DNA of 64,000 bases from Calcarisporiella thermophila CBS 279.70. Lineage: Eukaryota > Fungi > Calcarisporiellomycota. The position numbers were made by a program, and so were the translations under genes. The DNA is taken from assembly GCF_041956535.1 (NCBI RefSeq), contig NW_027192210.1, positions 190,273 to 254,272 of the forward strand. Direction: 5' to 3'. Shown piece by piece: positions 4,726-9,600 of this stretch. Under the pieces are notes generated by a model. That model searched no databases. It was not told the DNA's origin and was given only the letters and a program-made list of their open reading frames with translations. Position 1 is the stretch's first letter. Each line of letters opens with the position of its first letter.

Positions 4726-4732
4726 TATAAAA
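4726..4732 (+). promoter_or_regulatory. TATA box of the secreted repeat precursor gene
   Basis: TATAAAA 120 nt upstream of the ATG at 4846, followed by a pyrimidine-rich leader. Confidence 0.6.
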
Positions 4733-4845: not shown

Positions 4846-5553
4846 ATGAAGCTCTTAAGCTCCACCCTTGTCCTGGTTCTGATCTCAGCCGCGGCCGCGC
4901 TGCCCATCAAGCGCGGGATCCTCGACGGCGCCCTCAATAACCTCGATTTGCTCGATCACATATCCATCGCCAACACCAACATCAATTCCGAGATTTCGGA
5001 CGTGGAGAATCGCAATGCCAACACCGATGCCGACGGGGATTGCGACAACAGTGTGATCACCAAGCGCAAAGTCGCCAAGCTTCCTTGGTGGCGGCGTGGA
5101 CTCCTCGATGGTGCCCTCAATAACCTCGACTTAATCAGCCATATTTCCATTGCCAACACCAACGTTGACTCGGACGAGTTCACGGCCGAAAACAGAAACG
5201 CCAACACCAAGGCAAGTGGCAAATGCGACAACTCGATCGTGCAAGGCTCAGGGCACCACCACCACCACGACAAGCGTGCCAATGACCGAAAGGAGAAAGC
5301 CTCCGCCCCCCCAAGTCTAGACCGCCGAGGGATCCTCGACGGGTCACTCAATAATGCGGACATCATCGACCACATTTCGCTCCTCAACTCCAACGTCAAT
5401 TCCGATAGTTCCACCGCAGAAAACAGAAACGCCAACACAGTAGCGAAGGGCGACTGCGACAACTCGATCTTCCAAGGGGGCAGGCATCGCTGGCACAAGC
5501 GGCACAAATTCTGCAGGCGAGCAAAGGCCAGCGGGACGCCCGCCCAGGAGTGA
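4846..5553 (+). CDS. Secreted Kex2-processed repeat protein (KEP) precursor with three ~49-aa Asn-rich repeats
   Basis: Signal peptide MKLLSSTLVLVLISAAAA-LPIKR. Repeats begin GILDGALNN (4915), GLLDGALNN (5098) and GILDGSLNN (5329), each immediately after KR or RR and closed by KR. Intronless, 235 aa. Confidence 0.9.
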   Translation: MKLLSSTLVLVLISAAAALPIKRGILDGALNNLDLLDHISIANTNINSEISDVENRNANTDADGDCDNSVITKRKVAKLPWWRRGLLDGALNNLDLISHISIANTNVDSDEFTAENRNANTKASGKCDNSIVQGSGHHHHHDKRANDRKEKASAPPSLDRRGILDGSLNNADIIDHISLLNSNVNSDSSTAENRNANTVAKGDCDNSIFQGGRHRWHKRHKFCRRAKASGTPAQE

Positions 5554-6643: not shown

Positions 6644-9600
6644 ATGAAATCGCAGTATAAATCCAAATCCACTCCGAGACGAAAAAGAGCCCACCTGACG
6701 GCCGCTGAAAGACGGGAGAAGCTCTCGACCCGGAATTCGACCACATCTGCAAGCGAGGATGAGGAAGACGAAGACGAAGATAATCATCGCGGCAGAAATA
6801 CAAAGAATGGAAGGGGCCGGGCGAGAAAAAGAGAAGAGGAGGACGGAGTATATTGCAAATGTCGGAGAGGATACGATGGAAAAGAATTTATGATCGGTTG
6901 CGATGGATGTCAAGGTACGGGTCATGCTTACCGATATATTTAGAGCACATACAGGATCCTAACTCTCTTCTACCACTCATTCCTGGATTTTCCGGGGCTT
7001 TAGAGTGGTTTCATGGCCGTTGTATTGGCATGACTCCGAGCGAGGCCAAGCTCAACCAGCACTACTTCTGTGATAAATGCCGAGAGGGTATGAAGAGCGA
7101 CAGAAGCATAGGGCGAGAAAAACTAAAAGGCAAGAAAATCGCAGCCCCGAAGAAGAAGATGGAGAAGAAATCGCGCAGTGTCAAGAGTAAGCACGGCCTA
7201 CTGCCAGATGAAAATATTTTTTTATTCTACTTTTTGCTTATCATCAATCAATCTGGCTCTAATTTCTCCCTCCTAGGTGTACCGCCGACAGTTCCGATAA
7301 AGAAAACCAAATACCCCTCCTCTACATCTCTCCTCGTAAATCCTGTCGGTGCCGAAGAGATCGACGATGACATATGCCCGGTTTGCGAATTCGAGTGTAC
7401 TTGTCAGAATCAGCAAAAGCAGGCACCTAACTCCCATGAGTTGCCCCCGATGGGCAAGTGGTCCAGCCAGCCTTCCGCCACCGTGCTCGCGGGAGGGCAA
7501 GCGATGCTGGATTACTTACCGGAAGATGGGGAGGATAGGGTGGACTCGGATGCGTCGACAATAACAGACATAGATGAGGCTGATCGAATACCAAATCGCA
7601 ACCACGCAAAGAGCAAAGGCCGAAGAAGATATGTGTGGGTGGCCGCAGACGGTGACAAGCTCATCGTGGAGCTCAAAAAAGGCCATGATATAGTCGTTCT
7701 CGATGGGCCGCTTCATTTCAGATCGACAAACAGGCCGAGGGGGGCTGGCAAAGGTAAAGGCAAAAGCAATGTGGGGCGACGACGGTCAGCAACGGTCCTT
7801 TCATCAGGCTCGGAGGTGTCTATTGGGTTAGAGGGAGAAACATTAAGTGCAAGCGAAGAGGACGATGTCGGCGACGATGTGGATATGGTGCTGGAGGAAG
7901 AAAGATATTTGATTGGGCAATTTGAGGCTGAAGCATCGAGTGATAACTCTGATATTGATGATGATGATGATGAAGAGGAGGACGAGGAGGAAGAGGAAGA
8001 GGATGAGAATTGGGATGAGGACGAAGAGGAGGACGACGAGGAGGATGCGGGCAAAGCGAGCGACGACGAAGGCGCTCGTGACTATGTATTGACTCGAATA
8101 GAGAGTGAAAAGCTTGTGATCGAGACACAAATAGAAATCGGAGAAGAGGAAGAGGAGGAAGGGGACGAGGGTTATAGACGATTAGCGAGGTGGAGCGATT
8201 CGGACTGGGGCAGTGAGGAGGAATTAGAGGAGTCTTGGTTTGTAGACACAATAGAATCGAGTCGAAGCGATGCAGATACCGAGTATGACCGGGATGGAGA
8301 GGACGACGAGGACGGGGATGAGAGTGAAAATGAGCACGGACCCGAGGATGGCCACTTTCGCGATGTCGAGTTTGCCGGCGCGGGCGCTTCACTCCTGGAT
8401 TTATCTCCCGAAGCCATTGTTGCACTGCAAGCCATGCCCTCCGAATATGGTCTGGATATGGATACCTCAGCTGATGGCCCAGCTCAAAAAGACGATCGCA
8501 TCTTGCGGATGTTTGGGGAGCAGTTCGCGGCCCTGGGCTCAACTCCAACTTCGCCTTCTCTGCTGCCGCTATCTCAGCCCACACCGGTACAGGATAGAAT
8601 GGACGCAAGACATGCCCGAGATTTAGTATCGGCTTTGGTGCGTGCCAGCACTTCACAAGTGGCTGCGGGCAGCTCTGGGAAACGGGGGAGGGAGGTTTTA
8701 GCCTCCGCTGGTGACTCATCTCTGCCCGTTGGATCACGGCAAATTCTCCCACGGTTCACCCCATCCTCTCCCGAGATGAATAAGGCCGTGATCGAGGGGT
8801 CCTCGGGAGCAAGAGTGGCGGGCAGCGAGAAGAAAAGATTGAGCGTAGAGGTGAGAGCGCTATTTTCCCTAACCCCGTTTTCAGACCCTAATTCTGATCT
8901 ATTGTATCGTCTTCCCGTAGTATTTCATGGGCGGTGCCAAGCGAAAACGCAGTTCGCTCAGTCTTCCTGCCTCGTTTGCCAGTGCTGAACTCGGGGCCTC
9001 CTATGCCGCGGCCCCAGCAGGATCCACGGAACCCAATGAACGCGAGCCGTCTCCGGTTCCGATCGACGAGATTGTGGACACTGAGCAGCTCGATCTGACG
9101 CCGTCGCGCTCCCCCTCCTCTGAACCCACTAGCCCCGCAAACCAACGACTCCTCAAAAACCTTTCGCGGTGGGAGCGCATTCCCATCGGTGCCTTCCGCC
9201 GCTCCCGACGCCTGTCTTCGGCCCCCTTTATCCCCATCACCAAGGCGCTGAAGTCCTCGGCAGTGAATACAACGCTCTTAGGGAGCGAAAATTACCGACG
9301 TCATCCACACCACTACCAGCATTTTCACATTCATCACTATCACCACTACCACTTCTCCTCTTCGCGGAATTTCCATTACACAAACACCACCGCCACTTCC
9401 ACTGCCTCCGCACAGAACACTACCAAAGACGACTTGGAGCTTGTCTTGGCGGACGAGGTTAGCAAGCCCCCCTCCTCTGCCTGCTCGACGCCGTTGCACT
9501 CGCCTCTCTTCTCGGGAATGATTGTGGGGCGCGGATGCCCTCCCTTCAGTCTAGATGGGGACGACTTGATCGACGACGAGCTGGCGCTAGACCCATTTAC

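Follow-up and report, generated by a model that had tools for sequence, protein, structure and literature searches.

To our knowledge, the repeat peptides that fungi release by Kex2 processing are as a rule confined to particular lineages, without counterparts in bacteria. Their precursors, the Kex2-processed repeat proteins (KEPs), combine a signal peptide with repeated units bounded by KR or RR (PMC7329392, PMC6339444, PMC9769878); the Kex2 repeat peptides assayed in PMC9769878 showed no antibacterial activity. In Ustilago maydis, the pre-pro-protein Rep1 is cut at Kex2 sites to yield peptides of 34–53 aa which form a surface amyloid (PMC3133707). Asn-rich imperfect repeats with inward-facing, alternating polar residues and disordered monomers are also known from curli CsgA and from FapC of Pseudomonas (PMC10192328; 10.1101/2025.03.15.642095), and AlphaFold2 models curli with an average pLDDT of 83 (PMC10192328).

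The window analyzed here, a stretch of 64,000 nucleotides of contig NW_027192210.1 of Calcarisporiella thermophila CBS 279.70, contains a gene that resembles KEP genes in its secretion signal (judged by inspection), its homologous units bounded by KR or RR, and the presence of kexin-type genes in the same genome. It differs from them in that its unit of about 50 aa matches no named family and occurs in bacteria and phages as well. By its layout, the window gene is a KEP gene whose unit represents an undescribed cross-kingdom peptide family. Neither Calcarisporiella nor the core motifs of the unit were found in the available portions of the text and supplements of the KEP survey, and a literature search with the core motifs returned nothing relevant.

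Precursor gene and its surroundings

The precursor of 235 aa is encoded by one open frame (4846–5553, + strand) without need of an intron, as had been proposed in the sequence-only reading of the locus. Its parts are as follows.

4726–4732, + strand: TATA-like element TATAAAA, 120 bases 5' of the ATG (consensus match only)
4846–4899, + strand: predicted signal peptide, residues 1–18, with Lys, hydrophobic core and Ala-Ala-Ala cleavage site (by inspection)
4900–4914, + strand: short pro-piece, residues 19–23, ending in the first KR
4915–5061, + strand: unit 1, residues 24–72, 49 aa, Cys at unit position 43 without spacer partner
5062–5097, + strand: KR, basic/aromatic spacer of 8 residues, RR
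5098–5271, + strand: unit 2, residues 85–142, 58 aa, His5 tail, Cys at unit position 43 without spacer partner
5272–5328, + strand: KR, spacer of 15 residues, RR
5329–5496, + strand: unit 3, residues 162–217, 56 aa, His/Arg/Trp tail
5497–5553, + strand: KR, four-residue spacer ending in Cys, RR, short tail, stop codon

Dibasic sites occur at residues 22, 73, 83, 143, 160, 218 and 224, and each of the three units (3/3) lies between an opening KR or RR and a closing KR. The earlier counts are confirmed: the units align without gaps, contain 26 Asn (9 + 8 + 9) and one Cys each, and lack N-x-S/T sequons (P ~0.006 under shuffling of these three units). A fourth Cys is located in the tail. Unit 1 contains ten acidic residues and a single basic one. 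As for the reported TATA box, the element itself is present, but the TATAAAA 7-mer is not enriched in the window (11 occurrences, compared to 7.6 ± 2.6 expected by chance). Any two of the three units are identical at 32–34 of 49 residues, while their 4-fold degenerate sites match only at 5/14 to 9/14 positions, indicating that they are old duplicates under selection at the protein level.

The neighbors of the window gene are ordinary eukaryotic genes coding for NAC-alpha, an FAD monooxygenase, a PHD protein and a WD40 protein. A spacer of about 2.1 kb separates the gene from the divergent FAD monooxygenase gene upstream, whose start codon is near 2758; the downstream spacer, up to the PHD gene at 6644, measures about 1.1 kb. 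Contamination as a source of the gene was rejected, since multi-unit polyprotein genes reside on contigs of 0.38–1.6 Mb and the window gene is located among intron-containing eukaryotic genes. A biosynthetic cluster shared by the fungal or by the bacterial loci was likewise rejected for the DNA examined around them. A NAC-alpha gene is found upstream on the same strand both at the window gene (417–1163) and at paralog L041 (L041:4239–4925), possibly as a trace of an old segmental duplication.

Expansion in the C. thermophila genome

Calcarisporiella forms its own early-diverging fungal lineage (NCBI taxonomy); a protein that NCBI lists under C. thermophila agrees with the present assembly at 100%. 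A search with the unit profile revealed 90 matches in the C. thermophila genome, distributed over about 20 genes that hold between 1 and 12 units apiece (19–21 genes, as two loci contain assembly gaps). The top score in this genome was obtained by unit 3 of the window gene. Among 87 complete fungal units, 81 begin directly after KR or RR, and nearly all paralogs show the same build of the predicted signal peptide on inspection. No multi-unit polyprotein from any other fungus was found among the 1.84 billion representatives searched. The window gene accordingly appears, judged from its sequence, to be one of about 20 Kex2-type polyprotein genes making large amounts of variants of a small, presumably unmodified peptide, which the fungus shares with soil bacteria. 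Neither this expansion nor the probable phage-borne bacterial origin discussed below had been noticed in the sequence-only reading.

The genome contains six kexin-type P-domain loci, at C5:1110032–1112179 (genome G000), C7:757755–759762, C17:258385 and C19:558104, two of which occur as close pairs; this is an expanded set, in a fungus with many Kex2 substrates. The spacer regions of several paralogs (L036, L043, L046, L049) share a second conserved peptide unrelated to the unit, which reads Arg-Met-Arg-Met-Val ... Ala-Thr-Ile-Gly before KR.

In the sequence-only reading, the lineage had been described as not known for classical hydrophobins. However, three genes of the C. thermophila genome (L130:1444–1746, L131:8–361, L131:1486–1827) exceed the Pfam cut-off for PF01185, and the argument that the units replace hydrophobins therefore falls. 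Hydrophobins have an eight-cysteine pattern, whereas the units of the window gene contain one Cys each and do not match Pfam.

Properties of the unit

The unit is an acidic peptide of about 50 aa with 20% Asn, 2% Gln and a net charge of about –3, which sets it apart from cationic antimicrobial peptides. Conserved columns are Asp4, Asn8/9, Asn24, Ser25, Asn32/34/36 and Gly41; Asp-His at positions 14–15 is conserved as well, with His15 reaching only ~50% after weighting. Positions 10, 27 and 42 are the main ones at which Pro is tolerated. The N-terminal half is amphipathic, residues 18–47 exhibit the 180-degree hydrophobic periodicity of beta-strands, and the unit alignment shows i,i+2 covariation, a weak signal given a Neff of 45. 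A three-rung internal pseudo-repeat of 16 residues was the best offset found, yet it is not significant (P ~0.3). AlphaFold2 predicted no globular fold (pLDDT ~39 with and without alignment; 38.6 with an 85-row alignment) and built no solenoid from the 85-row alignment, and a Foldseek search with the predicted structure gave no match.

His-rich tails occur on 21/87 fungal units, among them units 2 and 3 of the window gene. A sequon is present in 35/87 fungal units, so that sequon avoidance, as suggested by the window gene, is not a trait of the family.

The proposal of an invariant lone Cys that cross-links subunits was not borne out either. Cys is found in 18–19 of the 87 units from the fungus; the bacterial cores lack it. 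Where a unit carries Cys at position 42 or 43, a Cys almost always closes the short spacer that follows, just ahead of RR: such a partner follows 14 of 18 Cys units according to a script and 16 of 18 on reading, while an odd spacer Cys occurs in none of the 69 Cys-free units (Fisher p 6e-13, with units within one gene not being independent). This co-occurrence is better explained by a disulfide that joins unit and spacer inside the precursor than by cross-linked subunits. Unpartnered Cys is confined to units 1 and 2 of the window gene; in the spacer after unit 1, Trp occupies the place of the partner Cys of paralog L035. The sequence suggests that the Cys of the terminal four-residue spacer is the likely disulfide partner of the Cys of unit 3, and units 1 and 2 could pair with each other.

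Relatives in bacteria, phages, other fungi and a grass

Single-unit proteins are encoded by Streptomyces, Streptodolium, Kitasatospora, Saccharothrix, Nocardia and Actinokineospora as well as in metagenomes. Single-unit proteins were also found in two Orbiliomycetes, Orbilia oligospora and Dactylella cylindrospora, and in the grass Stipagrostis; the named carriers are mostly filamentous soil organisms. Within Streptomyces the gene is single-copy and rare (5/301 genomes, one of them the seed), and across the phylum 1/401 genomes carries it, namely the seed itself. The gene is mobile, being located on viral contigs beside an anti-repressor gene, inside the head-tail module of a prophage (P0047) and on two megaplasmids. 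No neighboring gene is conserved across 24 actinobacterial loci, and no modifying enzyme, immunity or receptor gene recurs; the earlier view that the unit is not a small RiPP core agrees with this absence of a conserved modifying enzyme beside the bacterial relatives.

Four routes to the mature peptide are discernible. Single bacterial units follow either an Ala-x-Ala Sec signal or a double-Gly leader, others are encoded by leaderless genes in which the unit follows the start Met and in-frame stops lie upstream, and the fungal units follow dibasic sites. All four routes lead to nearly the same mature N-terminus, consisting of Gly, two hydrophobic residues and Asp, and several Streptomyces peptides also share their last four residues with units of paralog L037. 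These shared ends of bacterial and fungal peptides provide the strongest indication that the unit is the product that functions and that cleavage takes place at KR/RR, and they support the initial interpretation of the gene as a Kex2-type polyprotein that releases its units. The double-Gly protein P0029 is encoded between an HlyD-like gene and the gene of a C39 peptidase-ABC transporter in cyanobacterial-like DNA; for P0024, the C39 peptidase-ABC transporter is not adjacent.

In two actinobacterial loci (L031:8001–9153 and L033:1979–3088) the unit forms a fusion with an unknown domain of ~85 aa, and an HsbA gene (PF12296, hydrophobic-surface-binding) comes after the fusion gene; at L031, a GH12-ricin gene lies upstream of the fusion. 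A bacterial secreted protein (L126:4443–4745), encoded directly after a trypsin-family protease gene, contains two units joined by Lys-Arg and is a bacterial version of the polyprotein design. At L118:4616–5165, a leaderless unit gene is situated 4 bases 3' of the gene of an ArsR-type regulator, with a FecCD iron ABC transporter operon in divergent orientation. In Stipagrostis hirtigluma, a signal-like leader is fused to a clear copy of the unit (L060:6001–6294, on an 8.1-Mb contig) in plant-like genomic DNA of the one assembly that contains it, possibly representing a microbe-to-plant transfer. Eleven Streptomyces genomes (G060, G097, G100, G125, G216, G220, G262, G282, G288, G290, G300) gave weak matches, which were left out of the carrier count; they concern short frames, mostly of 72–131 aa, with the match spanning the signal and the first ~25 mature residues and falling mostly on the signal peptide, and may belong to a more distant sister family.

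Evolution and transfer

Paralog L037 has units that reach 90% identity (46/51) with the prophage-borne Streptomyces protein P0047, as compared to at most 65% identity to units of any other fungal gene. Recent transfer as the cause of this identity was rejected, since the 4-fold degenerate sites match at chance level (31/110 fungal versus bacterial sites, 0.33 being expected by chance; the comparisons share one partner). The amino acid sequence has thus been conserved while the silent sites are saturated, suggesting that the transfer is old and the peptide under very strong constraint. Of the first 42 residues of unit 3 of the window gene, 34 are identical in the actinobacterial P0007, and units of paralog L050 are up to 76% identical to the double-Gly protein P0029.

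The fungal units are not monophyletic. When 138 units were placed in a tree, the fungal rows required 9 changes and formed one clade in 0/200 bootstrap trees, and a single fungal clade was rejected with p-AU 0.003 on a set of 74 thinned rows, from which 28 long or biased rows were left out. The unit tree is unrooted and comprises only 47 columns, and strong constraint can mimic shared descent. These sequence data support several exchanges between bacteria and the fungus. Because of the wider spread of the bacterial units and the nesting of L037 among Streptomyces, we infer that transfer proceeded from bacteria to the fungus.

Comparison with known families

The family was not recognized in the sequence-only reading, and searches of Pfam, NCBIfam, PHROGs and PDB sequences did not reveal a family for the unit, nor a match to a characterized globular domain family in Pfam, NCBIfam or the PDB. 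PDB sequence matches from one search were due to His tags, and an Atlas search with the unit alone gave no usable match. If the unit is a surface amyloid, Rep1 is its closest functional analog, fibrils of the unit being a proposal; the unit differs from Rep1 in being acidic and Asn-rich and in having bacterial counterparts. The homolog searches, which did not include a direct pairwise comparison with Rep1, yielded no smut-fungus protein among the named homologs.

The bacterial unit proteins resemble chaplins and rodlins in that they are small Sec-secreted proteins of filamentous actinobacteria consisting of a signal and a short peptide, and the nearest named Atlas clusters of one Streptomyces member were those of rodlin and chaplin (0.81 and 0.79, at lead level only). 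However, homology to these proteins, with which the unit had been set side by side, was not supported for chaplins (PF03777; no domain match, hhalign profile-profile probability 0.2%) and rejected for rodlins (NF041022; 2.5% over 18 columns, with a template of only two rodlin sequences), the chaplin and rodlin profiles having been built from fetched genomes. The unit profile picks one separate gene per carrier genome and not the chaplin or rodlin genes; there are 6–12 chaplins per tested Streptomyces genome, whereas the unit is rare in the genus. All five Streptomyces carriers tested have chaplins.

Like curli and Fap proteins, the precursor has Asn-rich imperfect repeats with alternating polar residues, and its peptides may be disordered as monomers. 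In contrast to these proteins, the unit lacks a Gln-x10-Gln kernel, an export operon, a confident solenoid model and a PDB match, and while curli and Fap repeats are stacked in one chain, the C. thermophila units are predicted to be cut apart. P0029 resembles class II double-glycine bacteriocins and microcins in its double-Gly leader and adjacent C39 peptidase-ABC transporter gene, but differs in being anionic, in lacking a recognized immunity gene, and in that its core uses three other routes as well; none of the NCBIfam bacteriocin models passes the cut-off. Dikaritin RiPPs have a UstYa/DUF3328 oxidase encoded beside the precursor, whereas the window gene is flanked by genes of an FAD monooxygenase and a PHD protein. 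UstYa (PF11807) gave no match in the C. thermophila genome, with the control also remaining without a match anywhere.

Possible functions of the released peptides

We tentatively favor, at somewhat below an even chance, the interpretation that the units are self-assembling, beta-rich peptides of surface fibrils or films. According to Kex2/Kex1 biology, signal peptidase and kexin would cut the precursor and Kex1 would trim the basic residues, releasing three unmodified, acidic peptides of 49–58 aa that start with Gly; unit 3 would probably stay tethered to its four-residue spacer by a disulfide. The peptides may be disordered as monomers and then self-assemble on hyphal, spore or substrate surfaces, acting like Ustilago repellents or chaplins without homology to either. 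In such an assembly, the N-terminal half, being amphipathic, would turn toward hydrophobic surfaces; stacking would involve the Asn-x-Asn-x-Asn strands, and the variable tails at the C-terminus (rich in His in the window gene) would be on display.

Such a coat is suggested by the nature of the invariant residues (Asp, Asn, Ser and Gly), by the beta periodicity and weak i,i+2 covariation of the C-terminal half, and by an amphipathic N-terminal half in a monomer without predicted fold. About 90 coding copies in about 20 genes, together with the six kexin-type loci, suggest bulk production. The pairing of unit fusions with HsbA at two bacterial loci, the mostly filamentous soil carriers and the Rep1 precedent (PMC3133707) point in the same direction. 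On the other hand, AlphaFold2 builds curli solenoids well (PMC10192328) but not the unit, and the 16-residue internal repeat lacks significance. C. thermophila possesses hydrophobins and the tested Streptomyces carriers possess chaplins; rare single-copy genes on prophages and plasmids are more typical of conflict or niche cargo, and the leaderless copies would not be secreted via Sec.

The main rival, close behind the surface peptide though on the unlikely side, is a soluble cross-kingdom effector, ligand or decoy that acts on a conserved target in neighboring microbes as a toxin, antagonist or signal; phages would spread it as a moron, and the fungus would have captured and multiplied bacterial variants to compete, mimic or manipulate. 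A soluble ligand would be consistent with the near-fixed N-terminus, whether generated by signal peptidase, a double-Gly C39 transporter, Kex2 or Met removal, with double-Gly export as used by class II bacteriocins, and with a patchy gene that lacks conserved neighbors and travels on phage contigs, a prophage and megaplasmids. The 75–90% identity kept at saturated silent sites and the matching of different fungal subfamilies to different bacterial variants fit as well. However, the unit is acidic, its invariant residues are mostly small and polar, no conserved immunity or receptor gene adjoins it, ninety copies exceed the need of a signal, and other, different Kex2 repeat peptides had no antibacterial activity (PMC9769878).

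A role in metal or mineral binding, in which the acidic scaffold of Asn and Asp and its His-rich tails would capture or buffer metal ions in the surroundings of the hypha, appears improbable. The His-rich tails on 21 of the 87 fungal units, the conserved Asp-His and the leaderless bacterial copy behind an ArsR-type regulator and next to FecCD iron transporter genes would suit this role, but bacterial single units and most fungal units have no His tail, His15 is conserved in only about half of the weighted sequences, and iron-transporter genes were seen beside the gene of just one protein. Least probable is that the precursor escapes complete cleavage and works as a whole repeat protein, or that it is a RiPP precursor whose modification is carried out by an enzyme encoded nearby. 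Unit-spacer disulfides could hold the pieces together, the FAD monooxygenase gene lies divergently upstream, and a P450 gene follows the unit gene in 2/22 Streptomyces loci; however, that P450 is paired with a terpene synthase, no paralog has the FAD monooxygenase neighbor within the paralog DNA examined, UstYa has no match (nor did its control), and both the start of 81/87 units directly after KR or RR and the co-terminality of bacterial single units with the predicted cleavage products argue against such a precursor.

A more comprehensive scenario, which we regard as rather unlikely as a whole, would see the unit as an undescribed peptide module independent of export route that circulates in soil bacteria on phages and plasmids and was captured several times by C. 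thermophila, and separately by Orbiliomycetes and a grass. Near-identity between kingdoms would be kept as the fungal and bacterial copies must co-assemble or hit the same target, and the fungal polyproteins would constitute a library of cross-seeding or mimicking versions.

Conclusions

The unit released from the C. thermophila precursors would be a bacterial peptide that was repackaged, from a single unit following a leader to polyproteins with as many as 12 units. The identity of up to 90% that has been kept after saturation of silent sites allows an unusually clean prediction of the mature peptide ends, and the unit is a short, synthesizable molecule suited to tests of whether it self-assembles, cross-seeds or acts between species. 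Should it prove to be a surface amyloid, hydrophobins, repellents and chaplins would be joined by a new class, from a thermophile; an effector would point to a conserved target shared by soil microbes.
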